The notes below the pieces were generated by a model. It was not told the DNA's origin and searched no databases. It was given only the letters and a program-made list of their open reading frames with translations. Below, one piece after another: positions 1 through 55,219 of a DNA stretch of 64,000 nt. The position numbers and the translations under genes were made by a program. This DNA comes from Dimorphilus gyrociliatus (Eukaryota; Animalia; Annelida): assembly GCA_904063045.1 (NCBI GenBank), contig CAJFCJ010000017.1:806001-870000 (forward strand). The letters are read 5' to 3'. How positions within the stretch are numbered: position 1 is the first letter of the stretch; the number at the start of each line of letters is the position of its first letter.

Positions 1-2515
1 GTCAAACTTATAACTCTTTTCAGCCAAATCAGTTGCTCTTCTGCAAAATCTATAAGTTTTAATATATATAAATACGCCTGGTGGTATATATCGTATTCTA
101 TCACTTTTATCATCATCACAACTCCGCTGAGGAATCCTACATCGAATTCGATTTTCTACAAACACAACCAGAAAACTTCGACAGTCCGAGAATTTTGTAC
201 ACTCCTTTGCACATTCGTCAACAGACTGCACTGTCTTTCTTATTTGACTTAAATCTTCTAATAGACTGAAATGTTTACAAGTTCGGTCTGATAGTTTCAA
301 TTTACCAGGTTTGTAGATTTCGAAAGTATAATAATTGTATTCGCCGAATTGGCTTCTTTCCAAATGCTGATATAAGTTTCTAGGAATAATACGAGAATCT
401 TTGAACGAGCACCAAATTTGAATTCCCAAATTCTTAAAACAATTCGATCTTCTTTTTATTCCTTTATGTTGAAAGAAATGAGCAGCTGAAGCATAATCTT
501 TAGAAAAAATATCTAAATCTAAGTTTAACGTAAATTTACGAAACTTTCTCGGTATAACAACATTTAAAAAATGTTTGTAAGATAAACCAAAAGAATAACA
601 TATACTTTCAACAACTGATTTAGTTTTCAAATCAATATTTTCGGCTCCGGTAGGTAGAGTTAAACAAATAGGACTCCACATACCTTTCCACTTAACATTA
701 AGCATACCGCAAAATATATCTTCATTACCTCCCTCAAACTGTATCATACTACAATTAAATGAGCTGTATTGTTTTAAACTTAGAAGATGATCTATTGAGT
801 TAAGCTGTGTTATTCCTTCACTTGACGAAGATATTAAAGACTTTTTAACCTCATTAGTGTTTTTACTAGAAGGAATTTCGTTGTAAGGGGGATAGCATGA
901 ATTTTCAGAGCAACTCTTTCCCAAATCGGAGAATTGAAGCTAGAATATATTTTAGTTAATATATTTGTAAATATATATACTACAACAACACTTAAATACT
1001 TTACATAACTCTGTTTCTCTTTTATTTCTCTTGAAAATAGTTTAAATAGAGCGCTTTGTTCCCATCCAAAGCGAGGCCTATAACAAATTGCTGTAAGCCT
1101 AGTTTTACATGTTGTAATATTTGAAAAATTTGCAAATTTTGTTTTCTGATATCTATTTCTATGTCTCGTATCATTCTTATAAAGAAGGTGTGTTGAAAAA
1201 CAGTTTCCATTGTCTAAAGATTGAATGGGAAATGTGAGAGAGTCGATTTTATTACCTCGTCTTCCTTTCATCTTATCATAAGTATTCTCCCAATAATAGC
1301 CACTGCCAACTCTTGTTGCTCCCACCCAAATATATTCTCCTTCTGAGAAAAATGTTGAAATGTAGTTGAGTAGGTTTTTATTAAGCATAATAAGACTCAT
1401 GTTTAAATGATTGCATTCTTTTATACCATTTTGATAAGTTACACTTGGTAAGACAACTAGGCAACTTTCTGATATAGCATCATGATAATATCTTATATAT
1501 CTCGAAGAATAATCCCCACAAAATCTAGCAGTTTTTTTATATACATACTGTCCAGGTGCCAAATAGCTGTAAATAGGTAGAGGCTTCCTGAAGCCATCAG
1601 AGTCTAAATCTAAAATATCTGGACAGTGATGATTAGTTCTATAACACACTCCCCTACCCATCGGCAATATAGAACCAACGAAAAGAAAAGCTTTGCACAT
1701 ATCATCCGAAGCACAACTGGAGCTGCACTGTTTAATCGTCATTGAACTATCATAGGAATCTCGAGGATTTCTCCCAATAACATAATCATATATTAGTTGT
1801 GTAGGCCCGCAATATCTCCAGGAAAAATACTCTCCAGGTCGATAGAATTGCATACTGTAATCGAAAATATTAATATGCATATCTGGATATTCTTTATGAT
1901 CATCGCATGATACAAAAAGTGCTGATTTTCTATTGCAAGTTTTAGATCTTGGTATTCTCATCAATTCAAGGTAGTGCCGACTAGACATTCTAAAGTTGTA
2001 ACGAAAATGGTTGATTCCGATGGCACTTCGTAGGAAAGGTTTCTTTGTCCAAGAGCTCTTAGATGAATGAAGCGAGCGACATATTGCACCAGCAGTATCA
2101 TCATCATTTAATTTGCTGCCTGATGCACATATTCCCGCCAGGCTTCCCAACCATCGAAGATGAGCGTATCCACAAATAGCTTTTGATGTCAAATTTTTAG
2201 AGCAATCCTCACCAAACCTACGCAAAACTATAAATCCATCAGCTGATTCGTACTGTTCTAGCTCATTTTCTCCGCACGACTTATTTCGCCCTGCTAAGGA
2301 TCTAACTGAACTCTTGGAAGATATACACATTTTGTAAATTTGCGTTTCATAATTGGCGCTTGGTAGATCGTTAAAGGAAGGTTTGCATAGATTGTTAGAA
2401 TTTGTTATATCTGAGCCTTCTGGGTCGCAAAAATAGTAACGAATTCTGAAGTCATCTCCAAAATACTGATTAAACTCTAAAATAAAAATTTATTAGCTGA
2501 TTTGTAAACTCTTAC
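1..2515 (-). CDS. Multi-domain extracellular-type protein with repeated divergent SRCR - PAN/apple - C-type lectin modules; 3' end lies outside the window, 5' end unresolved (about 2.5-2.8 kb)
   Basis: Track ORF 834..2330 has an SRCR-like motif (GICASG...AGAICRSL), a PAN motif (CSSSCASDDMCKAF...CY) and a CTL motif (SCLVVL...ECNHLNMSL...YIWVGATR...NGNCF...AICY). A phase-0 intron at 1004..940 (GTAAAG...TTCTAG) joins it to a second frame that is stop-free from 939 to 1 (313 codons, translated by hand) and repeats the SRCR and PAN motifs. The frame also extends upstream of 2330 to about 2475. Confidence 0.75.
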
Positions 2516-3149: not shown

Positions 3150-6100
3150 ATGAACAATTTCGAAAGACCCGAGGAAAATGAGAAGGAAGGGGTATCATAC
3201 ATGTCTTCTACTTTGCAAACAGTTCGTTGAATCTTCCTTTAGGTCTATGACATACTTTTCTTGTGTTATTTTAGGATACAAGCTTAGCAAGTTTATACTC
3301 TATTGACGCGCTGAATCTTAGCATCAGCAGCGGAACAATTAAAGCGGAGAATCGCTCTCTAAAATCTCATGTCAGGGATTTACAAGAGGAAATTGCTAAT
3401 TTACATCAAAAAGTTACGACATGGCGTAAGAAATGTAACGATCTGGAAAGAGAAAGAGTAGATACATTTTCTAAGAATAATGAAGAGGTAAATTTATTTT
3501 TAAGCATAATATTCATAATTTGTTGTAAAGTTATAAACTTTATAAAAATCAAATAAAAACTCTTTTCTAGTTGGGGGATGCTTTAAATGACGTTGCAAAG
3601 ATTCGGGCACAGCTTGAAAAAAGCGAAGCAACCAGACAGAGCTCTGAATATGAAATGACCAAGCTGATGAGAGATTTAAACAATGAAAAGAGAGCTAACG
3701 TTGATAAGGAAAAAGTTCTAACAGAACTTAATGAGAATATGCAAAGTAATACAATATCTTTCTTATATCTTAGAGTATGAATTTAATTGGTATTTATTAT
3801 GTAAAACAGAGAGAATGACAGATATGTCAACAGAGATAGAGAAACTATATGGGGATCTTAACAATAGTAAAGGAGAAGCGAGAAAAGAGGCAGAACGACA
3901 CATGAAAGCTCTAAAAGATCAAGTTTGTAGTTTTAAATTAATAGCTTGTTTATATTAATATTTATTAGTGAATTCCTCTGCTTAGGAAGCTAGATTGTCC
4001 GATTTGGTATCAACAAACTCAAAGCTTGAAAGGGAGAGAGATAAGTTAAAAGTCGAGTTCGAAGACAGAGATTCGTAAGTCAATTTATGCATTTAATCAT
4101 TAACAATTTATTTTTTATTTCTTCTTCAAGGCAAGTCAAAATTTTAAGTGAACGATTGAAAGGAATTCAAATAGAAAAGAAACAGCAAGCTGACGTTATT
4201 CGCGATAATTTTGAAGAATTGAATCACATTCGCGAAAAAGAACAAAATATGATTGTTCAATATGATGTAAACAGTTTTCTTTATTTCGCGTATACAAATT
4301 TAGTCATGATTCGAAAATTTCGATTAGATATCTCAGGAGAGAGTTAAACACCTGGAAGATCAGTTGGAATCTGAAAGAGCTGCCCACTTGGAAAGTAAAT
4401 TTAATGCAGAAGTTCTTCAAGTAAGTCATGAAATCCTGAAATAATCATCTTTAGGAAGTGTGATTTCAAATTTAGTTGAAGATTAAAGATCTAACCGGAA
4501 GTATGGAAGTTGAAAGAACATCGAAAATAGAATCCATAGAAACCACTGATAAACTGAATAAGCAATTACTGTAAGTATTTAAACATTCTTATAAAAAAAT
4601 TCAACTATTTAATGAATTAAAACGTATATATAGAAATATTCAAAGCCAATTCGAGGAGGAAAAACAAACGTCTCACGATATTCGCCACAAATATAATCAG
4701 TAACAGTTTTTTTTATAAATATATTATCCATTTTCTATTGATGAAAATATTTATACATAAAACGTTTATAGACTTCAAGCAGATTTTAAAACGCTGAAGA
4801 AACAACTAAAGGAGGAGCATGGAGAGAAAAAATCAGTTATGACCAAACTTTGTGGTCAATTAGAATTACATCAAACTCATATAGACCAATTAAAAAAAGA
4901 ATTAAATGAGGTTAATCAAAAAATATCTGGCCAAAAACTTATCTAACTGTCAATGTTTCAACAGGCCAAACAAACTCAAACTGATCTGAAGCGAAATTAT
5001 GAATCGAATATAGCAGAAATTGAAGGCTTACTGAATGGTTATCAGCTTCAAGATTCTCAAAGGAGAAAGGTTTTAAAAAGTATGTCATTTGCAATGCTGT
5101 CTTTCGTCTATTTATAGAAGAACTGTTTTTAATAACAGATAGCGTCACTTATTCTGGATCTAACTGCGTCAATGGCGTCCGTAAAGTGCTACAGGAGTAT
5201 AAAAAGAAAGTAAAAGAGCTAAGTGAAGAGGTATGTCTACATGATCTTCTGTAAAACATTATTAGTATAAGGATTAATATTACAACAGAGTTCAGCTGCT
5301 AAAGAGAATATTAGTAAAGAAAAGAGGGAAAAAGAACATTTTAAACAGCTTTACCATGCAAAAGAGAGATCCCTAGAGAATACAAAGCAGGCTCAAGTAG
5401 CTGCTAGTAAAGAGCTTAAAAAATGTAAAACGGATTACACAGACAAGGAAACCTTTTTGGCTAAATTAAGAACGGATTTAAAATCTGCCAAAAATGGACT
5501 GTCTAAAGAAAGAGAGCAGAGAGAAAGCTTACTAAGTGAATTCAAAAAACTTCAGGAAAAATTGAAAAATGACGAAGAATCAAGAACGAATTATATACAC
5601 TGCGTTTATCATCAATTAAAAAATGGTAAATTTGTCGGAAAACAACCAAATGGAAGTTTAACGTGGTCTCAAGTCGTCGTTCTTTTGAATGAACAAGTTG
5701 CCGTTGTAATTCAAACTCTTTCTGAGGCAGATGAAAAACTACGAGAATTACAAGAAATTGTCGAGAGACAGTCTCGAGCAATAAAAGAAATAGACGAAAA
5801 CAGAATTAAGGAAATAGAATCTCTTAAGAATGTTAATGACGAACGATCAAAACTCTGGGAAGAACAGAAAAATGCCCTAGAAACCCATTATAAACAAGTC
5901 CTTAAACAAGTCGAAACTCAGCAAAAGCAAACCAAAGCATTAGCCGATCAAGCTCTAAATAGAGTTAAATCAAGCGGTAATGTGCGCGCCTCACTTCAAG
6001 AGGAAAATGAACAATTACGAAGCTCTGTTCAAGCTTTTGCTCAGCAGCAAAACTCTTTACAATTAGCTGTAACAATGCTTTCAGGAGCATTGATGCCACT

Positions 6101-7936
6101 CCATAATCGAACTGTAAATTTAATTAATCAGCGTCGTTTGATCCTGAAAGAAAATAAGGCACTGACAAATTTTAAAACCGACGTACAAGCTTTGATATCA
6201 GCACTAAATTTCGAACAAGATCATCCAAAACTAAAATCTAAATGCACAACTTCTCCTTTATTAAAATTTAGATCGATTGTTATTTGTGTAATAGCATCAA
6301 ACCGATTGAATACTCTTCTAGCACAACGCTCTACCTTTATCGTGGTTGACGACGCAGTTTCCGGTTTAAAAAGAGTTTGCGTTCAACAAACTAACAATAA
6401 TGAACAATCCAATTTCAAAAATCAAGCTCTGATATCAGATGTTGCATCTAGTATGGTAGATTTACAAATCGTACTTTCTCAAAAACAACGTGAGTTTCCT
6501 ATTTCTACTATTTTTATGATGTAAAAATAAGTAAAAAAATTCTCTTTCTTTAAATTAGTAGAAGATAGAAAATTGATTGAAAACTCGTCCAGAAACAGTT
6601 TCATGAAAATGTTAACTTCGCTTTCAAATTATTATAATCATGTAGATAATGACTTTAGTAAAGATTCCCTTATTAGTCAACTGGGAAAAGGGTTAGCAAA
6701 TGCTCAAAGACGTACAACTTATAGAGATTCAACAATTCAAGCAGTCCAAGTTGGCCTTCAACAGCAATTGCTTAATTTTACAAAGAAACTACATGCTTCA
6801 GAGTTGCACAGGAGAGATTTACATTCTGAACTTTTACAACTGAAAGCCGACAGTGAGGACAATGAACGAAAAGATGCTGATCTATCGCAATTAAAATCTG
6901 AAGTAAATGATTTAATTCAACAAGCTGGAAATATGGTGTCAAAACAACAATTAGAATCAGTCTGTGATGAATTAGCTTCTGCTCTGAAGAGAGAAGAGAA
7001 GGCTCAGAAATTATTGAAAGAGCAAACAAGCCAATTGGAAGAATTGAGGAGACAAGCCATTAAAGACGCGAGTATCGCTCAAGAGAACAATTTCTTAAAG
7101 ACCAAACTTAAGAAGCAAACAGACAGAGGCGATAACTTGGAGCGTCAGACAAGGAAATTTGATAAGGATCATATTCGTCTTCAACAAAAAATTGACGATG
7201 CCGAGAAATCTTTAAGAACTGCTTCAAAGTAAATTTTTCTTATATGAAATCGATAAATGAAATTTACATGTTTTATTATTTCAATTCAGAGATAAACAAA
7301 TTTTAAAGGCGTATATGAAAAATGTTGAAATTGCATTAGATAAGGTTTGAAATAGTCGTACTACCCACTGAAATTTGTCATAAAAATATTTGTAAAATTT
7401 AGATTATGCAACAAGGAATGTATGATACTACAACTGTGGATTTAACACCTCTTCTATCTGCTGATCTTGTGCCATCCGTCCCAAAACCTGGTGCAGACTT
7501 AGCTCAATGCCAGCTACTTGTAGCGACATTTGTTGACGCTTACCAAAGAATTAATCAGCGTATATATCAATCTCATGAAGAATTATTAAATTGTCAGGAG
7601 GAAGTGACAAGACTTAAGAAAAATATATCTCAAATGAAAAGGCCTAGCTTGGATCAAATTAGAAAACCAGAATATCACTTCCAACCCTTGATTATGTAAG
7701 ATAATTCTTAAATGAAAGTTATCTTTGCATGAATGCTAATGTAATTTTTATACAGTGATGAGGGATCTCCCATTATAGCTGGGTCTCTTGGTCCTGACGG
7801 AGAGTAAGTTTATTCTCGTCTTATTTGATCAACAATATACTATTAATGTTGTCATTTTCCTCTCAGTGGATATCAAACACCAAAAGTTAGGGGTGAGCAA
7901 GTCCTGAAGAGTCAAGCTGAGAGCGATGCAGCGTAA
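3150..7936 (+). CDS. CCDC171: Coiled-coil domain-containing protein 171 (many exons)
   Basis: ATG at 3150 and a chain of coiled-coil exons with GT-AG introns. Motifs LESERAAHLESKFNAEVLQ and LLKFRSIVICVIASNRL resemble CCDC171 as I recall it. Last exon ends ...AESDAA-TAA at 7936. Confidence 0.8.
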
Positions 7937-12909: not shown

Positions 12910-15454
12910 ATGGCGACAGTAGAGGATGATACTTTGGAAACTTTATTAAGTAATATCTCGTTTATTTAATATTGATAATGTTTTCAATTATGCTTGATAA
13001 AGAGTTTAAGAGAGATGCTATTTAAATCCTTTCAATTTTATTGTAAACAATACGCCAGTTTGCTTATTCTGTTCAAGGCCATCGTGAAACCGGTCAAAAA
13101 AATAAAAATTGTGAATATTTTTTTCCAATAGGTAAGATTACTAATCCATCAAACCAAGATGAAGATACGGACGTTATTATGGCATTTTGCGATCAAGTCA
13201 ACAAACATCTAGAAGGTCCCCAAATTGCCATTCGCCTACTCGCTTACAAAGTACAATCGCCTCAAGAAAGAGAATGTTTGCATGCATTATCTGTAAGCAT
13301 ATTATATTTATTATCAAATATATTCATCATAAAATATATTCCCTAGACTCTGGAAGCTTGCGTAAGGAATTGTGGTAAAAGATTTCATCAAGAAATTGGA
13401 AAATTTCGTTTTCTCAATGAAATGATTAAACTAGTATCTCCTAAAGTATGACATCTTTGAAATATGTTTAAGAGTTAATAATAATTATAAATTTTCAGTA
13501 CGCAGGACCGTATACTACAGATAAAGTTAAGAAAAAAGTTATAGAGTTATTATACAGTTGGGCAAAAGGTTTGAAACAAGAAACTAAAATTATGGAGGCC
13601 TATCAAATGTTGAAAAAGCAAAAAATTGTTAAAGACGATCCGACATATATTGATCAGGTTGTACTAAGATATATTCGTATAAAAAATGAATAATACCATT
13701 GTATATTTATTAATAAAATATAGCATATCGATATCTTGGTTCCTCCCACTCCTGAAAAAGAGCGCAATTCCATATTTAATGACGATACAAAGTCGAAGCA
13801 ATTGCAAAAATTACTCAGTAGTAAAAATCCAGAAGATTTACAGGCAGCTAATCGTTTAATTAAAAATATGGTTAAGCAAGATGCTGAAAGAATGGAAAAG
13901 ATATCTAAAAGAACATCAGAGTTGGAAACTGTGAATAACAATGTTAAGCTGTTGAACGAAATGCTCAATGTTTATCACAATGCAAACACAGCTCAGTCAG
14001 ATCGAGAGATTATGAAAGAATTATATGATAATTTAGAAAAGGCGAGACCAAATTTGTTCAGGTTAGCCAGCGATGCAGATGAACAAGATAATGATGGTAT
14101 TAATCAAATATTGGAAACAAACGATTCTGTCGCTAGAGTTATGACTTCGTTCAAAGAAAAAATATCAACCGATGCAAATTGCTCTACAGTTGCGGCAACA
14201 AACAATGATCCCTCTTCGTTACTTGACTTGGACTTCGGTGCTAAGAATTCAGTAGATATTTTGCGAACGCAGCTTGATGAGCTAGGATTAAATACAAAAC
14301 TGGAGACGACACCACAATTAGAACCTACCACTACATCTGAACAAAAAGATGATGACTTGGTCCAATTAGGCGATATTTTCTCCAATAGCCAAACTACATC
14401 AATATTTGGTTCAAACACTAGTAACCAAATGGCCAATCCTCCAATTTACAACCCACCAGTTTATCAACCACTATCAAATATTGGTAGTACAGCTACGGGC
14501 AGTATTCTGACTCCATCGACACAATCAGCTTTTAGCTCAACAAATAGTACGAAACCGAAAGCCACCATTGGAACAAACGCCTTTGATGATTTGGATATTC
14601 TTGGAAAATCCCTAACAACTGAGAATAGCAAGTAATTGAGCACTTGTAATTTATTTTTTATTTTTATTAATTTCGTTTTCATGAACTAGACCCGCAACGT
14701 TTGATCAGAAACCGGAGGCTAAAACTCTAGCTGAGCTGCAACAAATGAAAGTGTCATCCGAAAGTCCGAATAGTAAAAGCCTTATTGACGATCTGCCAAT
14801 GTTAATTCCCAATTCTAGTCCTCCAGAGCCAGTGACTTTAGACAACGTTTTCGTTGCATTAGATACTATTCAATTCGGTATACATATTATTAAGTGAAAA
14901 TTGTTGGTAATTATAAATAATTCATAAATATATATCCAACAGCCTCAACAACACCCTTAGTTGGCTACGATAAGAATAATGTTCGAGTTATGATAAATTT
15001 CACAAAAAATACAGTTGCCGACAGGCCTGATGTAGCTGTATTCGTTGTATCAACATTAAGTACAAGTTCTGCCCAATTAACGTCTTTTTCATTTCTCGCT
15101 GCTGTTCCTAAGGTTTGTTTTCATGAAATAAATAAATACATTTGTAAGATATTGAATTGATTACCACTGATATTGTAATAGGCAATGAAAATTAAATTAC
15201 AACCCGCATCCTCAACTTCATTAGCAGCATTTAATCCAATAGTACCCGCCTCCCCTATTACACAAGTCATGCTGATTTCCAATCCAAATAAGGTTTTATT
15301 TTATAAATAAGTATTTGGAATTTTGTTAATAATTTACAAATTATAATATCTACAGGATAAAATAAAGTTGAAATATAAAATTACTTATAAACTCGGAGAG
15401 GAACAATTTACTGATAATGGTGACGTAACAGAATTTCCAACATTCCAATTATAA
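12910..15454 (+). CDS. GGA: ARF-binding clathrin adaptor GGA (VHS-GAT-hinge-GAE)
   Basis: VHS (KITNPSNQ...EGPQIAIRLLAYKVQSPQERE...FHQEIGKFRFLNEMIKLVSPK), GAT (LLSSKNPEDLQAANRLIKNMVK...LFRLAS), GAE (AAVPK|AMKIKLQPASS...PITQVMLISNP). Stop at 15452-15454. Confidence 0.93.
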
Positions 15455-16020
15455 AAGAAAAACAACAACATACAAAAAAGATTAACGAGAATTATAATTT
15501 TTGTAATATTTAAACTATTTTCAATTTGAATTTATATATGTTTATGTATAACAATAACATCAATTAACTTTAATAATTTAATGATGTAACTGTTTTAAGC
15601 TGATCAATGTTTTCTGAAAATGATATTTTAAATGAGTTTTCGTTTGATAAAAGAACAAATTGTGCAAATGTACAATGAATTTATTATAATGCAAACTTTA
15701 TTTTCATATTTTCATTTGAACCTTTCCTCTCGTGCTTATCAACTAACATTCGAGAGTTATTAATTTCAATGTCACTGTCTTCTTCTATATGTATCTTTCA
15801 CTCAAAAACCTTTGAACGAAAAAAAAACACCTGAAGGACTTCGCAACTGACATTACCTTTCTTATTTTTAATGAAATACGATAAGAAGCTACTTATTTAT
15901 AAAATATTTTTAATTCAAATGACTGAATATATGTAATCGGTGAATTAAAAATTACATTTACACATTAAAACTTTTGAACTTTCGTAATAATCAACAGTTT
16001 GAAAATTTAGCAAGACCAAA

Positions 16021-16028
16021 CCGGAAGT
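16021..16028 (+). promoter_or_regulatory. ETS/GABP-type motif CCGGAAGT upstream of DDI
   Basis: Exact consensus 110 bp upstream of the ATG; related motifs recur at other gene starts. Confidence 0.5.
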
Positions 16029-16130
16029 GCAAAAATAAAAACTGGTTTTGAAAAATATACGAAATATATCCAAAAAAAAACACTATTGGCGTTATCTTTC
16101 ATTTTCTCGCAGAATTAAGGTCAAGTTATC

Positions 16131-18354
16131 ATGAGAATAACATTAACATCAGTCAACGATGAGATTTATTCGCTGGACGTCAGTGAAGACATGGAACTGG
16201 AAAATTTTATGGCCTTAGCTGCTTTTGAAACCACTGTACCGGGTGAACAACTTCAGTTGAAACATAATGGAAGGGTATTATCTGGAAGGGAAAAAAAATT
16301 GAAAGAATTTGGCTTGAAAGATGGTGATGTTGTACTTTTTGGTCAAAGAGGAGGCTCATCTAATGGTTTGTGTTTTACACTTGGTTCTTAAAATAGCGCG
16401 TGCAGCTAACATTAAGTACAACAATTTATAAACGATTTTTATCTAGTACTGGAGCATTTTATCTAAAGAAAGTTGAACAATCTTTCAAAATAGCCATTAA
16501 CTTTGAGGTAACTTTATAGAATTGTTTCAAAGCTCCCTCAAAACTATTAAAAGGTATAATGTTAGGTTACCAAGTGAACTGTAGGGAAAATATTCTTATT
16601 TAATTTAATGAAAAAGGACATTGACTAAAATTTCATAACAAATTATTATAAAGTTCTTACACAATATATAAACGTTTTTTTTTTAAGTTTTTATAATGAG
16701 CTGTTGAATAAAATAATGGGTTATCTATTTAACCATGTAGTTTTGGACTTTTCAAATATTCAAGTTCCGGTAAATAGGCCAACACAACCGCAAGCTAGTG
16801 GTGGACAAGAAAACCCAGCAGTTCTCATGGAAATGTTAAGAAACTCCCCACACGAATTGGCTCTCCTTAAAGAGAGAAATCCTCCCTTAGCTTCAGCACT
16901 TGAAAGTGGAGACGTTAATAAATTTACACAAGTTTTAATGCAACAAAAAGCTGATAAATTGAAAAGAGAACAAGAAAGATTGCAATTGCTCATGAGAGAT
17001 CCAATGGACCCTGAAGTTCAAAAACATATTGCTGAAGAAATCAGGTACAATTGATTTTATTTCCTATATTCAGGTTTTCATTTGGCTGAGAAATTATTTA
17101 TTTTTAGGTTAAAAAATGTCGAATCCAACATGGAAACTGCTATGGAGTATTCTCCTGAGAGTTTTGGTCAAGTGGTTATGCTCTATATAAATTGCAAAGT
17201 CAACGGTCATGTTGTCAAAGCATTTGTGGATTCAGGTATCAGTCATTATTCTAACATTATACATTCATTACATCTAAAGTTTAATCAAATATTCGTGTTA
17301 GGCGCTCAAATGACAATCATGTCCAAGGCCTGTGCTGAACGATGTAACATTATGCGTTTAGTCGATACTCGATGGTCTGGTATCGCAAAAGGGGTTGGAA
17401 CCCAACAGATTATCGGAAGAGTTCATTTGGGTAAATAGATTGAATAGGCAGCTGTTGTAAATTAGTATTTGAATTAATTATAAAAGGTCAAATCCAAATT
17501 GAAAAAGACTTCCTTCAATCGTCGTTTTCTATTCTTGAACAACCAATGGATATGCTACTTGGATTAGACATGCTAAAAAGACATCAAGTAAGCATTTTGT
17601 CGATATTCATTCGAAACTGTCTTTTTTCTACGTAGAATATACATATGATTAAATATTTCCGTAGTGTATAATTAATCTAGAAGAAGATTGTTTAATAATT
17701 GGTTCCACAAGAACTAAAGTTAAATTTTTACCTGAAAATCAAATTGCTAAAAAGTCGAAAAAAGTTCATGATAAACAGTTAATATCTAGTTAAATTCAAG
17801 TTTTAGTCTACTTTGTTTTGTTATACTAATGTTTCTTATTCTTTCATAGTTTTTAAGTTTAGAACAATAATAAACAATTTTTACAGTGTGTCATCGACTT
17901 AAAGCTCAATGAACTTGTAATAGGAACAACAGGAACGAAAACGAAATTTTTGGCAGAGGCTGAACTTCCAGACAATGCTAGATTAAGTATGCAAGCTCCA
18001 GACGATGGAACAGTAACAATGGAAGAAGATAGACAATTAGCTGAAGCTCTTGCAAAGAGTGCTGAGCAAGTTACAAGAACTCAAGGTTTTTTTTGTTAAA
18101 TTTAGTTAAATGTGAAAAGTTCATTAACCTTAGTCTGCAGATTGATATTTTAAATTGTTTAAATTTTCTCTTTTTCAGTTCCTTCCGCAACGGCAACAGG
18201 ACCTCAAAGAACGTTTCCCGAATCTGATATTAATAAAATAACGAACTATGGATTTTCTCGGGATCAGGTCATTGAAGAATTAACAAGAAACCATGGCAAT
18301 GTTGACCAAGCTATTGCCACTCTTTTTGCAAGATCTCTAGCTGGCCCAAAATAA
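16131..18354 (+). CDS. DDI1: DNA-damage-inducible protein 1/2 homolog (UBL - helical - retroviral-type aspartyl protease - UIM - UBA)
   Basis: UBL exon 16131-16363; NPPLASAL helical domain; RVP with [20 protein letters not shown]|AQMTIMS and [14 protein letters not shown]; [16 protein letters not shown]; [25 protein letters not shown]; TAA at 18352-18354. Confidence 0.95.
17665..17793 (+). CDS. Alternative duplicated DDI exon, paralogous to canonical exon 17887-18085
   Basis: AG acceptor at 17663-17664, phase 0 like the canonical exon. Encodes [42 protein letters not shown]-stop; 13 of the first 24 aa are identical, ungapped, to [24 protein letters not shown]. Confidence 0.8.
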   Translation, partial: CIINLEEDCLIIGSTRTKVKFLPENQIAKKSKKVHDKQLISS

Positions 18355-18553
18355 ATGCTATCAAGTCATAACCGCTTTACTTTCAGAATAAAAAATATTT
18401 CATCTATAAAAAGCTAATAGTATTTCAAATATTTTAAAGTGGCACACGGTATGAAAAAACGGCTAAATACCAAAGATTTATACTAAAATAATTTCGTAAT
18501 CTTTTGACATGTTAAACAAGTCTTAAATTTATTAATAGTAAACAAGAAAATTT

Positions 18554-20760
18554 TCAAAAGTGATCATCAAACTCGTAGTCTCCATCTTCGTCCATTCGAC
18601 TCATATTACCTAAGGCCGATTCAAGCTTAGAAGAAAGATTTTCAGCTACGTTATCTACAAAAAATTTTTTAGATGTTAAATTCGTACAAGAACAGACAGA
18701 TTTATCACTTACTTGCTTTCTTTCGTTGTCTGATCATTTTTTTATAATCTTTCTTTCTATCTTTATTTAATTGATTTCCTTCAAATCTATCTTCTTTCTT
18801 TTTCTTATTTTTAAGCATTCTTTCAACGTCAATTTTAACGCTCTCTCCGTCCTCTTCCATTTCGTTTTCGTCGTCATCACTTTCGTCCTTCACAAAACTT
18901 TCAACTTTTACATGGTTATCTCCAACACTTGCTTTTATTGTGTCAAGGGCAGTTTTTTCCTCTTCCAGTAGAGCATCAATATCAAATTCAGCAGACATTC
19001 CTTGCACTATTTCTGAGCTCAGGTGACTATTTTCAGTGGGAACTTCAGGAGGTTCTGTATAGTATCTAATTCTTCCCTGATTCCAATCATTTATCACTAC
19101 TTTTCCGGCTGCTAACAAATCAGCTTTACCCCCTCGCTTTAATTTACCTTGTTTTATTGCTAGTTGATTCAAAAACTCGTCAACATCATTGAAACTGGGA
19201 ATTCCATATAAAATTTGTAGATGTTGTTTTGGACATCGACGCATAACAGCGCTTACAGGGGGAACGGGATCACTAATCGATTCAACCTTAACACAGTTTT
19301 GAAGAACATCATTTTCAGATTTTTTTACAACAACTCCTGGAGAGTCAATTAATTTTATATGCTTATCTAAGACTATTTCTTGTAGTGATTTCGTTACGCC
19401 AGGCGTTGCTCCTGTTGCACAAGCTCTCTCTCTCTTCAAAGAATTAATTATAGAACTTTTACCAGTATTTGGGAAGCCAACAATTCCAACCGATATTGCA
19501 GTTTTTACGTCACTCTTTCTACAATAATTACCCAATAATTTCATTAAGATGTCTGCCCCAATGCATACCGATCTTTCAGTTGAGTGTCCTAATAAAAGCA
19601 AATAATAAGTAACTTATGAATTAACTTTAATTATATCAGTGAAAATTATATAAATATATATTCATATCAACTATGAGACTTTGATGATTACACTTTTCTT
19701 TAATAGAAAGTAACACGCACCCTTTCCATGACCCAGTTTGCTTTTCTGAGTTTGAGTTGAAGCTTTAAATGCTACTGTAGGTAATTGTTTTCGAAGATAA
19801 ACTAACCAATTATCCAAATTATTTTTCGGTATCAAATCAATTTTATTCAACAATAACACTAGTTTTTTCCTACCGGAACTTACAACTGCTTCTTCTAGAG
19901 CTTTACACCTAGTTGCAATTGGATCTCTGGCATCCAAAACTTGAATAACAACATCACTTGCTTCTATCACTTTAGATAACTCCTTTGAATATTGTTTGAA
20001 AGATTGTTCTGAAAGTGAACTTTTCATTTCAAAGTCGATATCGTCTTCCATCATTTGTTCTTTCATTTCAAATTGTTTTCGTTTTTTTTCAGCATCTTTC
20101 ATAATGTCATCTAATCCTGGTCTATTTTTATTACGAGCTTGTTCTCGTTGTTTTTGTCTCTGTTTTTTTTGTTTTGCCTTCTCTTCTTCAACCTAAAACA
20201 TGTAATTTAAGTATGTGATTATTGTGTCTACTTTATAAATTATTTTTACTCTTTTTCTATGCGCTTCCGCCTCTGCAAGAATCTCATCTTTAAATGGTAA
20301 ACTGTTTGGTATACCAGGATCTTTGGCTGTAAAAGAGAAACAAAAATGACCTATTGTTTAGAAAGAATTTTGTCGATAGATTAATCTTAGATACATAGGG
20401 AATAATACCACTATATAGTACAACTTTTAGAGGCTCAACATACAATATATCGATTTACAAACTAAATTGAGATATCATTCTCAGTTATTACTGCAATTAT
20501 AAGAGTTTATAATTTACCTTTCTTCTTGTTGCTCTTTTTTGCTTCTTTTTTAACCTTTCGATTGTGTTCTCGAACCTGACAGAGAAGCATATATATCAAT
20601 AGATCACATTATCGCTCAAATTATACGCACTTTTCGGGCTATTTTATATCTCTTACGGCACGAGATACGCTTGCTGAGCTTCTCTATTAGAAAGAATTTA
20701 GAAATTAATGTTACAATTGATTATTGTTTTTATTCAACTACTTTTAAGGCCTTTTGTCAT
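18554..20760 (-). CDS. GNL3: Nucleostemin-family nucleolar GTPase (GNL3/GNL3L)
   Basis: N-terminal KLSKRISCRKRYKIARK and KDPGIPNSLPFK; circularly permuted GTPase motifs VLDARDP, LNKIDL, GFPNTGKSS, DSPG; ends DGDYEFDDHF-stop. Confidence 0.93.
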
Positions 20761-21154
20761 CTTTTCAGAGATAGATTCTCACGTGGTTAGAGAATTATTA
20801 TTTAGTTTGCCTGCCCAATTGTATATCCGGTAGCTGTCAATAATGCCATCTGTCGTTACTATTTATTATTTTATCTAGTATATTCTCATTTCCTCCATTC
20901 ATAAATACCTAACAGCCAGTTTCATAAATAAAAAAGAGTTTTACTAATTTTTCAATTAATTCAAAGAAAATTTGAAACATTATTGCAATACAGGAGGTAT
21001 TAACCTCCATTCAAATAAATTCTCACAATCTTCAGAAAACGCCATCTGTATTATTTTGAGTTTTGAATTTTAAAGTGGTTGTCATTCCACGTGTCTTGAT
21101 ACTTTGCGGTAAAATCAACGGCAAGTGCCTGCCTGTTGTGAGAAAGAAGATAAG

Positions 21155-22495
21155 ATGCCTCCAGCACGTTCTACATTCGCTCCTTCCGGAACAGAATTTG
21201 TAGAATGGAATGATATCGAACAAATCGAGCGGAAAGTTATTATCGGGGATATGAGTGCTTGGGAAAGAACTGCCAAAACTGTTGGGAAAAGGAAACGGTT
21301 TCAGTTTAGTCTTCTAAAGGAAATTTTTCTTCCATTTGGCTACCCAGCAAGTGTTAGTACAGACTATATGTCCTATCAAATTTGGGACAGCTTTCAAGCT
21401 TTATTCAGCACCTTAATGATGGCCATATCAACTCAAAAAATTTTAGTAGGTATGGGTGTTGGAGATGCCGCAGCGTCTGCACTCTCCGGAGCAATAGCTT
21501 GGATATTAAGGGATGGTATAAGTATGATATCGAAAATCATGTTCACCTGGTATACTGGCACAAATCTAGACGACTATAACAAAACTTGGAGACTTGCTGC
21601 CGACATTTTCAATGACTTATCTTTTATTGTTGATTATTCCATCAGTTTCTTTCCGGATTTCAAAATTTACATTCTGTGTATTTCTGGTATTCTTAAGTCT
21701 ATTGTTGGAGTTTCAGGAGGAGCAACTAGAATGGCAATCACCCAGCATCAAGCAAGAGATAATAATATCTCAGATGTATCCGCGAAGGATGGGAGTCAGG
21801 AAACATTGGTAAACTTGTTAGGCCTTATACTTAGCCTAACCGTTCTACCATTGTTGGGTAATAATGAACAAGTTACAATGATCATATTCATTTCATTAAT
21901 GCTTGCTCACTTGTACAGTAATTGGAGAGCTGTAAAAGCATTGAATTATGAAACGTTCAATATGAATCGTTTACATATTGTTTGTCAACAACTTGTTCGA
22001 TCGAATCAAATACTAAGCATTAAACAAGTCAACAAAAAAGAACCTTTATTTGGATTTGCTCCTAATTATAGATATTCAATTAAGCTTGGTGTTCCCTTGA
22101 TAAAATCTTTTGCTGTCGGTTGTGAAAGTTATCTTCTTAAATATAGAATTAGTTTTAATAATGGGGACAAATCAATCTATGTTAGTCTTTCAAGTGACGC
22201 AAGCACTGAGGATATTCTTGAAGCTGCAATTTCAGCTAGTATTATCAATACTATTATAGACGCAGCTCTTCGATGTAACAGAACGCCCGTGGAAGAGATG
22301 GTAGAGGACATAAAACTAAGAAGAGCTATCGAAATTTTAAACAGTTCAAATAGATGTGAAACAGATATAATCTGTCTTGTCTTGGAATTTATGTCGAAAA
22401 AGAGAATAATGCTACTGGATAGATTAAAACACGCTGGATATGATTTGACCGCATTTCATTTTTCGATTGATTCATGGAGATACAGTAAGCGGTAA
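21155..22495 (+). CDS. RUSF1: RUS1 family protein (C16orf58 homolog, DUF647), intronless CDS
   Basis: FLPFGYPASVSTDYMSYQIWD, WRLAADIFND, HQARDNNISDVSAKDGSQET, HLYSNWRAV. First ATG at 21155 (the track ORF starts at an upstream GTG). Confidence 0.92.
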   Translation: MPPARSTFAPSGTEFVEWNDIEQIERKVIIGDMSAWERTAKTVGKRKRFQFSLLKEIFLPFGYPASVSTDYMSYQIWDSFQALFSTLMMAISTQKILVGMGVGDAAASALSGAIAWILRDGISMISKIMFTWYTGTNLDDYNKTWRLAADIFNDLSFIVDYSISFFPDFKIYILCISGILKSIVGVSGGATRMAITQHQARDNNISDVSAKDGSQETLVNLLGLILSLTVLPLLGNNEQVTMIIFISLMLAHLYSNWRAVKALNYETFNMNRLHIVCQQLVRSNQILSIKQVNKKEPLFGFAPNYRYSIKLGVPLIKSFAVGCESYLLKYRISFNNGDKSIYVSLSSDASTEDILEAAISASIINTIIDAALRCNRTPVEEMVEDIKLRRAIEILNSSNRCETDIICLVLEFMSKKRIMLLDRLKHAGYDLTAFHFSIDSWRYSKR

Positions 22496-22694
22496 GTAAA
22501 AATCTATGCAAGAAAGCATATATTCCGTGTTTTATAAATATTTTTTAATGCCTTATAAGAGAAATATTGTTTTGTTTTGATTTGCTACTGTTTTATTCTG
22601 TTAATGAGATCTGTTTTGTAAGGAAGAATTAGGTCACTCCTTTTCTATATACTTTAAATACAACTTGTCTTTGATAGTAACGAAAAAGAAAATT

Positions 22695-25600
22695 TTATTG
22701 TGTATATAAGCTTGCGGCAAAAACAATGTCACGTTTTATTTTTGTGGACGCTTCCTCCATCTTTTTGAACATTAGGGGATCGCCTATCATTCTAGCTGCA
22801 TTTCTTACATCTCGTATAACTTCGTCAAGTCTCTGAATACAACGAACGATAATCCCTTCTTGCACGTCGGTTAATTTAGTTATTTCTTTAAATGAAGTTC
22901 CTCTTGCCCATTCATACACGACTTCCATTAGTTGAAAGTTAAATTTGCTGAGGAACTCTTCGGGGCCTTCTCGTCTCAGGAATTGTTTTTGAACGTCATC
23001 AACTTTCGACGCAACTCTTTCAAATTCCCTCTTAGCCGCAAGTAGAGAATTATTTAATTTCGCTTCAGATGCTCTAGATTGTTCGAAGACTATAGAAGAG
23101 AGTATAGCAGCAATTTCCTCCGGTTCTAAGCTATTTAAGGCATTTTCAAAAACAAGTTCTGTAAGAATTAGTTCGGCCTGGCTCATTTCGCAGGCAACTC
23201 TTCCTTTTAATTGAACAATATCATCTTCATCGATATAGCCTAAATGACGAAGAACTTGTAGCTTTTGCCGATATTCAGGGAGTAGTTGGAGACTTTCATC
23301 GGACAATAAATGCCTAATAGATTCATATTCTTTTTCCATTATTTTTCTTTCACGTATAGCATCGAAATTCTCTTCAAAATTGGCACTATGAACACAACAA
23401 TATGTGGAAAGAATATCTTCCAAGTCTTTTGCCCTCTGACAAATGTCAACTTCTGTAACACCTTTTAGCTTAAAATCCTTATAATCAAGAGTAATCGGAT
23501 TTTCATAATTCTCCTCAAGATAACTAATTAATTCTTTCATAGCTGTGACTGTAGACTGCCCGGGAGGATCATTTTGAAAGCGGGGGATAGCTCTCTTTTT
23601 CTCATCTTCAATAATACGATCACCGTTTACCTTTATTACTTTATTTAACAAATAGCAGATATTTTCAAATTTTAATTTCGACGTAAAGCACTTTGGATTA
23701 ATTACTTTTTTCAGCTTTAGTGGCAAAATAGTAGGCTGAGGATATTTTATATTTTCTTTACTTTCGTTTCTCTCTACCAAAAGGAAAGCTTGAAATGATT
23801 TATCATTAAAATCCGTTTTAAGTACTGCAGCCAATCCACTATTTGTTATCACTAATCTACCGGGAATGAATAATTTCTGAGCGGTTAATGACCCAAGTGA
23901 CGCTTCTAAAGCCATTGTACGATTTTCCAAATATCGTTCATTGGTATCGTAATAAGCCTCTAAATCTCCACCAAAATCCAAAATTTCTGGTAAAGATTCC
24001 CTTTTCTTTTCAAGTTCTATCAATTTTTTCTCTAAATTATCGGTTTGGCGTCTAGAACCAAATTCCGAAAATGATCTTCTCATCATATCCGTAACTCGTA
24101 TGTCCTTTACGCGTAAAAGATTTAGAATCATTGAATAAGTAACCGTAAATTGACTTTGCAGTTGAGTAGGTGGACCAGTCATCATTCTATGCAAATCTGA
24201 TAATTCAGCTACTTCTGTTTTGCAGAGAACAATAACAGTTCCAGTTGTATCTTTTCCTCTTCTGCCAGCTCTCCCGGCCATTTGAATATACTCACTAGGA
24301 AGTAAGTCCCTAAATTTCTTTCCGTCGTGTTTCCTACACGAATCAAACACAACAGTTCTCGCAGGCATATTGACACCCATAGCGAAAGTTTCAGTAGCAA
24401 ATAGTACCTTTACTAGACCCATGGCGAAAAGCATCTCTACAACTTCTTTCAATATTGGTAGAATACCGCTATGATGTATACCAATACCTCTCATAAGAAT
24501 ATCGCGCATTAGCATCACTTGAGGTAAACCTTGATCCGATCTTTTCAATTTAGATGTTGATTGTTGAAAAAATGTATAAATTTCATTCTTCTCTGTAGCC
24601 GTATTTAGATCTACCGATTTTAAATGTTGAGCATTTTCATCTATCCTTCGTTTAGAGAAGGTGAAGCAAATTGCAGGTAACTTTTCTTTCTTTTTTAACA
24701 TTTCTATGACGGATAGCCATACTCCTCGTTCATTGACCGGCTTTTTAGTTTTTGAACTCTCTTTCTTTGCATCGCAAGCTTTAGTATAACCGCTTTTTTC
24801 AAATTTTGAACCTTTAAGTATTAAAAATAATTCATTAGTGTTTTTTACAGAGCTTCCGGTATATAAATAATGTTCTAAAGGTACTGGACGCTGCAGTGTA
24901 CAAACAACGTAGACTTTGCGTTTTTTATTCCTGGCTACCCATTCAGCAAATTCTTCGGCTTTTGGTATTGTTGCCGATAGGAGAACAACGTTTACATGAG
25001 CCGGGAGCATAATAATAACTTCCTCCCAAACAACACCTCTGTCAGCATCGTTTATATAGTGCACTTCGTCAAATATTACCCACTCCAGATCCCTAATCAC
25101 ATCCGAACCATTGTAGAGCATTGATCTTAAAATTTCGGTTGTCATGATTAAGCAAGATGCTTCTTGATTAATTTGAACATCTCCCGTTATAAGGCCAACA
25201 TCGACAAATGTTTCTTTGAAATCTCTAAACTTCTGATTAGATAGAGCTTTAATTGGAGATGTATAAATGGCCCTAAAAGAATAGATATATGATATAACAA
25301 CGAAACACTTTTCATTGAACATGACCTACTTTGTCATATGCTTTCTAGCTAGGGCAATGGCGTATTCGGCAACTGCAGTTTTTCCCGCAGAAGTATGGGC
25401 GCAAACAAATACGCTATCTCCCCTCTCAAGGCAAAGTATGGCTTGTTTCTGAAAGACATCCGGCTCAAAACTCCACTTGTAAGCGGCATCAGGTAACAGT
25501 TCTTCAAATGGTGGCATTTTCTCTTTAATACTTAAAACTTGGACATATTCATTACCAATTATCTGTTTTTTGAACTTAGCTTCTTCAACAGTTTCTAATT

Positions 25601-53232: not shown

Positions 53233-55219
53233 TCACATACCAGGAGTTTTTCCGCCAAGTACATCTATAAGATGTTCGTTATAGTTTCTGAGCATGCCAT
53301 CAACTCTTTTTGAGACTGGCCTTATATCAGTTTCATGGCTTTTGGACGCTATAAACTCTTTAACGACAAAGTTGTTTTGCTCTAAATGTTGCCACTTTCT
53401 TTCCAAGTTAAGGAGCTGAATATGGGTTTCATTATCATTCAACTGAGTCCTCAAACCATCATAATCGCTTGACACATACACTAAAGCTCGTCGGAGGCTT
53501 TCACGACGTTTATATAAATTAATTTTGTCTTCTCCCAGTTGAAGTTTTCGCTCTTCTGCTTCGCGTTTTAGGCGATCTAAGTCCTGATAGATTGTCAAAT
53601 CATCATCCATACGAGATATTTGTTCTTTTAAATTTGCCAATTCAGAAGTAATTTTGTGCTCTAATGTCTCAACCTTTTCCAAATCTTCTTGTAATTTCTG
53701 GCTCTCCATGGCTAGGCTTGAAGCGGTTGTTTTTGACTTTTTCATTTCGTCTTCCTTCAGACCTAAGTCTTCTCTCATAGCAGTCAATTCTTGAGTACTT
53801 GGTACGTGACCTACCGCTTGCATATCTCCAGACATAGAATTTAGTATAGTTACAACATTCTGTTCAAGCATGCCAATCCTATCGAATTCTTGTTGTTTGG
53901 TGTCTTCAAAAGAAGATAAGAATTCATTCATTGTTTCTTCTCTTTTCTTTAACTCCCTGTATTTTTGGCTTTTTGCTCCCTGATTCTCTTCCAAATCTTG
54001 ATCAAGTTGCTGTATTTCGCTCTGAATGTTGCTTATGCGATCTCTTAAATCGAGTGTTTGTCTTTCCATAGCAGCAATTTCCTGGTTATCTTCTTTAACT
54101 TGTTTTAACAATTTTTCTCTTTCCTCTTGGGGTGACAAACGACTTGAGGTCTCAGTTATCAACTGATCTCTCTTTTCCTCTAGATCGTGAAGTTGCTCAT
54201 ATAATCTTACAGCTTCTTGTTTGACAGGAGAACTTGTCAATTCCTCATCTAATTCCTTACGTTTTAGAGACAATTGATCCAAGTCTCTTTGGCTTAACTC
54301 AAGCTGTCTTATGAGATGCTCATTAATTTCTTTGGATCTTATATATTTTTGTTTCATATTTGGTGGCATATCGGCTACCATGTTGTCAGCCATACTTTTT
54401 TCTTGTCGTAGTTCCAGTTCAAGAGCGGAAATTTGTTCTTGCTTCTTTTGTTTTTGTTCGAACAATGCATCTAGCACTTTACCCTCTCGTTCGTTTCCCG
54501 CCTTGATATCTTCGTAATCAATCTGAATATCATTTATTGATTCTTCTGTATTTAATTTATCTACTAATGTATTATAGTCTCCTAATTCTCGTTGACATTC
54601 TTTAATCTCTGCGGCTAAATTTTCAGCCCTTTTCTCATAGGTTACATAAGTTGACTGGTCCTCAACTGTCTTATCAGCCTCCCTTTGTAAATTTGATATT
54701 TCGCTGGATAGTTCCTGATTTTTTGTTCTCAGTAGGCCAAGAAAATACGTTCTATCTTTAACCAGGCGTTGATTTCTTCGAGGTCCTACAGCGGTCTTCA
54801 TTCCACCAAGACCTTGCTTTGTCATTGGTCTATCTGCAACTCTCACCTGAGAACTTAATGCAACACCTCCCCCAGATTCCTGTCCTCCTCCTCCTCTAGC
54901 AGTTCCAGGAGCCTTTAAGAAACAATATGAAGAACAATTATATATGCTTATATTTAAAGAGAAGACTATAGAAAAATGAAGATAGATAGTATACCATTCC
55001 AGTTGTCAGCCTTGTGGCAGTTCCGGGAGCACGACCTGCTCCTCTACTAGCTGGTCTGCCTGATGATGATGGAGGAATATTCCTATGTATAAATAAATCA
55101 TTAATTTTTAAAAGCCAAGTCTATAGATGATTTCAAACTGATTAAAAATAAGGTAATCGAATAAGAATATTAAATTTAATCGTTTTCTTTTAATAGAAGT
55201 GCTATATATCAACTTACAT
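53233..55219 (-). CDS. IFT74: Intraflagellar transport protein 74
   Basis: GRPASRG, VADRPMTKQGLGGMKT, DRTYFLGLLRTK, LERKWQHLEQNNFVVKEFI. The start codon is assembled across intron 55217..55083. Confidence 0.95.

Follow-up and report, generated by a model that had tools for sequence, protein, structure and literature searches.

The locus described here raises the question of why a gene for a DDI1-type protease should carry two copies of the exon that encodes the last strands of its protease domain, and whether the additional copy is put to use. The gene belongs to Dimorphilus gyrociliatus, a miniature annelid of the family Dinophilidae with a compact genome, and is located at positions 16131-18354 on the plus strand of a stretch of 64,000 nucleotides (assembly GCA_904063045.1, contig CAJFCJ010000017.1, positions 806,001 to 870,000 of the forward strand). 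This whole stretch is called the window, and all coordinates count from its first letter unless another locus is named. The additional copy, exon A (17665-17793, plus strand), lies between exon 5 and the ordinary copy, exon B (17887-18085, plus strand). A tandem duplication at this place had been proposed earlier from the letters of the window (the original prediction), and all the coordinates on which the proposal was built are confirmed by the sequence, namely the donor at 17588, the acceptor side at 17665, the reading to a TAA ending at 17793, the AATAAA, exon B at 17887-18085, the last exon from 18179 and the GTTAAA at 17789. Our analysis favours exon A as a functional protein-coding alternative exon, a tandem copy of the front part of the dimer-strand exon, and we put the probability of this explanation at roughly 0.7.

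Homology of exons A and B

Exon 5 (17487-17587, plus strand) terminates in the G-L-D-M-L-K-R-H-Q helix and ends in phase 0 at the donor GTAAGC (17588). The near acceptor is reached across intron 5a (17588-17664, plus strand; 77 nt; acceptor ...ccgtag with its AG at 17663-64) and opens exon A, which reads for 42 codons up to a TAA at 17791-93. The far acceptor (AG at 17885-86) opens exon B. The two exons are adjacent, homologous and of the same upstream phase (0), and 13 of their 24 first residues are identical in a gapless alignment, as had been predicted. BLASTP extends the match to 13/32 identical and 23/32 positive residues (E = 9e-9). The observed score of 69 was not approached by any of 20,000 shuffles, the top one scoring 41. 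A search of the 64-kb window in all six frames brought up no B-like stretch other than exon A. In the solved RVP domains of human DDI1 (3s8i) and DDI2 (4rgh), the counterpart of both exons is the C-terminal end (27-29 residues), exon B matching the final 28-29 residues with E = 3e-5 and exon A the same residues with E = 0.1-0.2. The E-value between the exons, the shuffles, the unique match in the window and the shared alignment to the human domains together indicate that the likeness is true homology and not chance.

The homology of exon A to exon B is confined to the opening 25-33 codons of the latter. Over 24 codons the two copies differ at a proportion of 0.92 of synonymous sites (pS) and 0.29 of replacement sites (pN), and over 33 codons at 0.78 and 0.37, respectively. 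Since synonymous sites are saturated and replacement sites are not, the duplication is old and both copies have been constrained since. In exon A, which has diverged from the front part of exon B, the core pattern of the Ddi family is retained: C1, I3, L5, L10, I12, G13, T15, F21, L22 and E24. The FLPE of human DDI1/2 is kept in exon A and lost from exon B. Differences between the copies fall at turns and exposed positions, where, for example, exon A has an acidic E-E-D-C as against K-L-N-E in exon B.

Conservation of exon A in a related species

A big protein search with exon 2 led to one close relative, P0001, on Logan contigs of the runs SRR23372216/28/29/31, and the comparison was made with its locus L001. 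A further locus, L002, is identical to L001 but for one intronic base, and the near-identical pair therefore provides no polymorphism data. L001 is syntenic with the window, with GGA-like, DDI and GNL3-like genes in the same order and RUS-like and SKI2 genes nearby. The distance is considerable: the SKI2 protein is 89% identical between both species, the synonymous distance of the DDI exons is >1, and the introns are merely 50-63% identical under forced alignment. Exon 2 is 66% identical to P0001/L001.

Exon A is present in the relative at the equivalent site (L001 6873-7040), where it again opens in phase 0 at the same Cys codon, which an AG immediately precedes. The intron ahead of it is 50 nt in length, with the donor GTAAGT and the acceptor ...gtttag; this length and the 77 nt of the window are near the species median of 66 bp (PMC7854359), and the intron from exon 5 to exon B measures 299 nt in the window and 292 nt in the relative. 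A conserved coding block of 33 codons (17665-17763, plus strand) aligns to L001:6873-6971 with 29/33 identical amino acids, while the nucleotides at codon positions 1, 2 and 3 are identical in 30, 31 and 17 of the 33 codons. The corresponding pS is 0.84 and pN 0.05 (pN/pS ~0.06; Fisher p = 1e-12). Over the 33 homologous codons, exon B likewise shows 29/33 identical amino acids with a pN of 0.08, so that exon A is, by this comparison, as constrained as the constitutive exon B. The strands of exon A are followed by a conserved lysine-rich stretch, K-K-S-K-K, beyond which both species differ in sequence and length.

At the distance of L001 a dead exon would be unrecognisable, and exon A is therefore maintained by purifying selection as coding sequence. 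Coding on the opposite strand as the source of the conservation was considered as well and is ruled out, because no minus-strand ORF of at least 25 aa overlaps exon A. The original prediction had pointed to frame conservation in relatives and to the rates of exon A against those of exon B as the way of telling a living exon from a dead one; the frame is kept in L001, and the selection on the two exons is alike.

The new copy had changed considerably before this state was reached. Against the corresponding exon of the bivalve Mya arenaria, 13/27 residues are identical for exon A and about 20/27 for exon B (a hand count from the same alignment), and all of 150 representative Ddi proteins from the big protein search score better against exon B than against exon A, the B-like end being found in every one of them and the A-like end in none. 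Exon A is thus farther from the outgroups than exon B, yet conserved in L001; the new copy thus changed rapidly at first and has been held constant since.

Domain organization of the two predicted products

The spliced gene model was searched one exon at a time, and its structure follows from reading the sequence together with this exon-by-exon domain scan; all exons are on the plus strand. Exon 1 (16131-16365) starts with the ATG at 16131, encodes a ubiquitin-like domain (Pfam ubiquitin, E = 5e-8) and ends in phase 1, with boundaries common to D. gyrociliatus and L001. Exon 2 (16741-17044; phase 2) encodes the helical domain Ddi2_HDD of Pfam (E = 1e-26). The retroviral-type protease domain (RVP) starts in exon 3 (17108-17235; Pfam Asp_protease profile positions 1-27), which ends in phase 1 with ...D-S-G, and has its core in exon 4 (17302-17430; Asp_protease E = 2e-18), so that the catalytic motif D-S-G|A, of the D-[ST]-G-A type, spans the junction of the two. 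Both are strongly conserved in L001 (40/42 and 41/42 amino acids identical, respectively). Exon 5 continues the domain over profile positions 72-105 of 109, and exons 3, 4 and 5 together cover positions 1-105. Exon B adds the C-terminal RVP strands, a linker and the UIM, and ends in phase 1 at the donor GT at 18086. The last exon (18179-18354; stop TAA at 18352-54) carries the UBA domain, as had been predicted, matching the yeast Ddi1 UBA (2mr9) with E = 3.9e-5, and there are weak Pfam matches of UBA type too.

The UIM-like motif of exon B (18022-18066, plus strand) consists of an acidic run followed by L-A-E-A-L-A-K-S, which fits the UIM pattern L-x-x-A-x-x-x-S and compares well with the tested human DDI2 motif L-A-E-A-L-Q-K-S (PMC4962041), in keeping with what had been read from the sequence before. 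The Pfam scan gave no match for this short motif. The whole exon-B gene model comprises 423 aa, the same length as the annotated public product at the locus, and its protein is an ordinary member of the Ddi1-like family with the order UBL-HDD-RVP-UIM-UBA.

As a side observation, the intron between exons 3 and 4 (17236-17301) is stop-free and in frame, and the two exons are called as one ORF of 118 aa in the window. The same applies to an intron of the relative (L001 7320-7403), across which exon B and the UBA exon have been merged into a single called product of 153 aa. ORF callers read through such introns, and exon-level protein entries of contigs of this kind therefore include translated intron.

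Ddi proteases dimerise by means of a sheet of six strands, to which only the C-terminal strands beyond the G-L-D-M-L-K/R helix contribute (PMC7072860; also PMC4962041). The earlier assignment of the duplicated segment to the dimer-contact strands fits this description. As exon 5 ends at this very helix, exons A and B each carry the full platform of one monomer, that is, its three C-terminal RVP strands. The product of exon A is most likely a protein with UBL, HDD and an RVP domain whose platform is the alternative one, ending in a lysine-rich basic tail and devoid of both the UIM and the UBA.

A possible mechanism can be put together from these elements. From the donor at 17588 the splicing machinery would choose between the near acceptor at 17665, across the 77-nt intron, and the far acceptor at 17887, across the 299-nt intron. 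Use of the far acceptor would lead to the annotated UBL-HDD-RVP-UIM-UBA protein. Use of the near one, which we infer to take place, would give a UBL-HDD-RVP protein of ~341 aa in which the whole platform sheet is the exon-A version, followed by the lysine-rich tail, with the UIM and UBA gone. Such a form might constitute a second protease pool, which would prefer self-pairing and recognise its substrates via the UBL and HDD only.

How an exon-A message would end

An in-frame stop is present within exon A in both species, and two ways of completing the message can be envisaged. In the first, the transcript would be cleaved before or at exon B. In the second, a candidate donor a|GTTAAT (17778-17783, plus strand; phase 2), the sole GT after the conserved block that is common to both species (L001 6983), would be spliced to exon B. 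A donor of similar sequence, GTTAAC, serves intron 2 of L001. By this donor exon A would measure 113 nt in the window and 110 nt in L001, neither of them a multiple of three, and splicing to exon B would shift the frame and meet a stop after five codons in both species. The predicted exon-A product is ~341 aa in the window; for L001 the shared donor predicts 341 aa and the exon's own stop 355 aa. Each conserved route thus closes the frame shortly after the lysine-rich stretch, and both endings would truncate the protein at about the same place.

The original prediction had named two or three isoforms. The truncated form which loses both UIM and UBA is favoured here, because the own-stop and the shared-donor routes yield the same type of product; the form that continues in frame from exon A to the UBA exon is unlikely for the same reason, and L001 is without the phase-1 donor it needs. 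The AATAAA at 17869-17874 (plus strand), 12 nt before the exon B acceptor, may be a poly(A) signal for an mRNA ending with exon A in the window; the corresponding interval of L001 contains neither AATAAA nor ATTAAA.

Some complementarity was seen between exon A and the tract that precedes exon B, in the window between 17684-17697 and 17868-17881 (14 nt at 86%) and in L001 between 6950-6959 and 7096-7105 (10 nt at 100%). A selector-type RNA pairing was considered on this account and set aside as probably due to chance, as the positions differ between the species and the tracts are AT-rich.

Weighing the explanations

The arrangement of the two exons brings to mind a strict mutually exclusive pair. 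Exon A would then comprise 17665-17788 and use the candidate donor a|GTTAAA (17789-17794, plus strand) in phase 1, matching the donor of exon B, to join the UBA exon in frame, and the product would have the alternative platform and the UBA but no UIM. GTT-type donors are frequent in this gene, and inclusion of A and B together shifts the frame, which is a known means of enforcing exclusivity. However, the donor is found in the window only, a GT in phase 1 being absent from L001 over the interval from the conserved block to the stop, and the route is therefore not conserved. Furthermore, the residues from the conserved block up to 17788 are unconserved in sequence as well as in length, and exon A corresponds to the beginning of exon B rather than to the whole exon. 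We consider a pair of this kind improbable.

Another explanation is that of a poison exon, whose inclusion would merely lower the output of DDI1 by a premature stop and mRNA decay, the peptide itself having no function. The frame-breaking lengths by the shared donor and the stop, reached after five codons of exon B and ahead of the last junction, would suit such a role. The selection seen here, however, acts on amino acids and not on RNA, with about half of the third positions changed and the first and second positions kept in 30/33 and 31/33 codons, and a purely regulatory exon would have no need of the Ddi strand pattern which exon A retains. A poison exon is thus very unlikely.

That exon A is a dead duplicate, a decaying remnant never spliced in, would agree with its absence from the public gene model, with the exon-A word search among proteins of 23-73 aa, which found no expressed sequence, and with its being missing from two outgroups, but is scarcely credible for a frame and acceptor which are intact in two species with saturated neutral sites and lie between unalignable introns, with a pN/pS equal to that of constitutive exon B.

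Several points weigh against exon A as a functional alternative exon. Exon A is known from genomic sequence, and the public annotation holds the exon-B product only. The comparison of exon A covers two species. The word search with the exon-A peptide was blank, a result of little weight as it covers only proteins of 23-73 aa, and a metagenome scan with the two-species exon-A alignment gave 160 pattern matches, of which none was confirmed. Of the features that could end the exon-A mRNA, the AATAAA and the phase-1 donor belong to the window only, and the shared GTTAAT is no more than a plausible donor. Splicing of exon A to exon B would leave a further junction downstream of the stop, and the mRNA might be degraded. 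Isoform-specific pairing of the dimers is conjectural.

The functional alternative exon can be taken further, to a view in which splicing swaps the dimer sheet and the ubiquitin readers in one step and so produces two pools that do not mix, A/A dimers without UIM and UBA and B/B dimers with them, perhaps specific to a stage or a sex in an animal with dwarf males. We regard this extension as tentative and rather doubtful.

Age and spread of the duplication

The phase-0 intron after K-R-H-Q is also present in Mya arenaria (L008, 1.4 kb) and in a eukaryote from the Tara metagenomes (L009, 3.4 kb), and is therefore old. An A-like copy was found in this intron in neither of the two outgroups. Exon A being present in D. 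gyrociliatus and in L001 and missing from both outgroup introns, the duplication is dated by these sequences to a time after annelids and molluscs separated and before the two dinophilid-type species parted. No further close relatives were found in the sequence collections searched, and a word search with exon 2 returned just the exon ORF of the relative and a Saccoglossus fragment. In these data, exon A is so far limited to one small annelid lineage.

The DDI gene of the Tara eukaryote shows a peculiarity of its own. Its exons 2-5 are fused into one ORF (L009 3319-4080; also L010) with the loss of three introns, and the 3.4-kb phase-0 intron after K-R-H-Q has been kept.

Neighbouring genes and other features of the window

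The order GGA-like, DDI1, GNL3-like GTPase (tail to tail with DDI1), RUS/UVB-sensitive-like and SKI2 helicase is common to both species (window 13736-25322; L001, L006 and L007), despite the saturated synonymous divergence. An ORF of 875 aa at 22695-25322 on the minus strand is 100% identical to DgyrCDS10928. The Pfam scan (E <= 0.001) gave nothing for the ORFs at 834-2330 (minus strand, 498 aa), 5457-6524 (plus strand, 355 aa) and 53233-54846 (minus strand, 537 aa). Four ORFs of 167 aa each were considered as a repeat family and rejected as such, being unrelated. The window has a G+C content of 32%, and an Rfam scan of its 64 kb gave no match.

Significance and comparison with known systems

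DDI1 and DDI2 cleave ubiquitylated substrates, and the share of their ubiquitin-binding parts and of the dimer contact in this activity is debated. The locus described here is an apparent natural experiment on this matter, as evolution seems to have kept, for a long time, an enzyme in which the dimer sheet is exchanged and UIM and UBA are missing. If expressed, exon A would show which parts of DDI are dispensable or exchangeable. It would also provide a clear case of an alternative exon that arose from partial exon duplication, evolved fast and was then fixed in a very compact animal genome. In addition, exon A shows the public annotation of the gene to be incomplete, only the exon-B form being described there. 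Tandem exon duplication giving rise to an alternative exon is a known process, met here in a well-known protease family. The original prediction knew of no description of it, and our literature search likewise found no duplicated exon or such an isoform in any Ddi gene.

Among the Ddi1-like proteases (human DDI1, 3s8i; human DDI2, 4rgh; yeast Ddi1), the exon-B protein is at home, with the same domain order, the D-S-G-A motif and C-terminal ubiquitin readers. The family traits UIM and UBA are present in the exon-B form only, the exon-A form being without both. A second, alternative copy of the dimer-platform strands, as found in D. gyrociliatus, was not met in the Ddi genes of the literature searched.

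The annelid DDI protein contains a UIM-like motif and a UBA together. To our knowledge, vertebrate DDI proteins have no UBA. The two elements were seen side by side in the annelid (18022-18066 and 18179-18354), in isoform X1 of Mya (L008 12493-12660) and in the Tara eukaryote (L009 7476-7658 and 8499-8657). According to PMC4962041, neither yeast Ddi1 nor the non-vertebrate Ddi1-like sequences possess the conserved UIM region. Judged by the UIM-like motifs of the annelid, the bivalve and the Tara eukaryote, the motif looks older than stated there.

Loss of the UBA is seen elsewhere in the family. The predicted isoforms X2-X5 of the DDI2-like gene of Mya arenaria (XP_052759654.1 and others; L008, CP111020.1; proteins P0010 and P0272-P0275) lack the long linker as well as the UBA and close with short basic tails after the UIM, and the lysine-rich tail of the exon-A form is similar in kind. 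However, all of the Mya isoforms share the RVP end and the UIM and switch only after the UIM exon, and their intron after K-R-H-Q has no duplicated exon.

With the class of tandem-duplicated exons, which includes the mutually exclusive pairs, exons A and B have in common the shared 5' phase, the adjacency, the homology, the purifying selection on both copies and the faster evolution of the new one. In mutually exclusive pairs either exon keeps the downstream frame, whereas here the matching 3' phase is not conserved, the donor at 17789 occurring in the window only. Exon A is a partial copy (25-33 codons) with a stop of its own and, on this comparison, appears to be more of an alternative C-terminal exon than a like-for-like swap.

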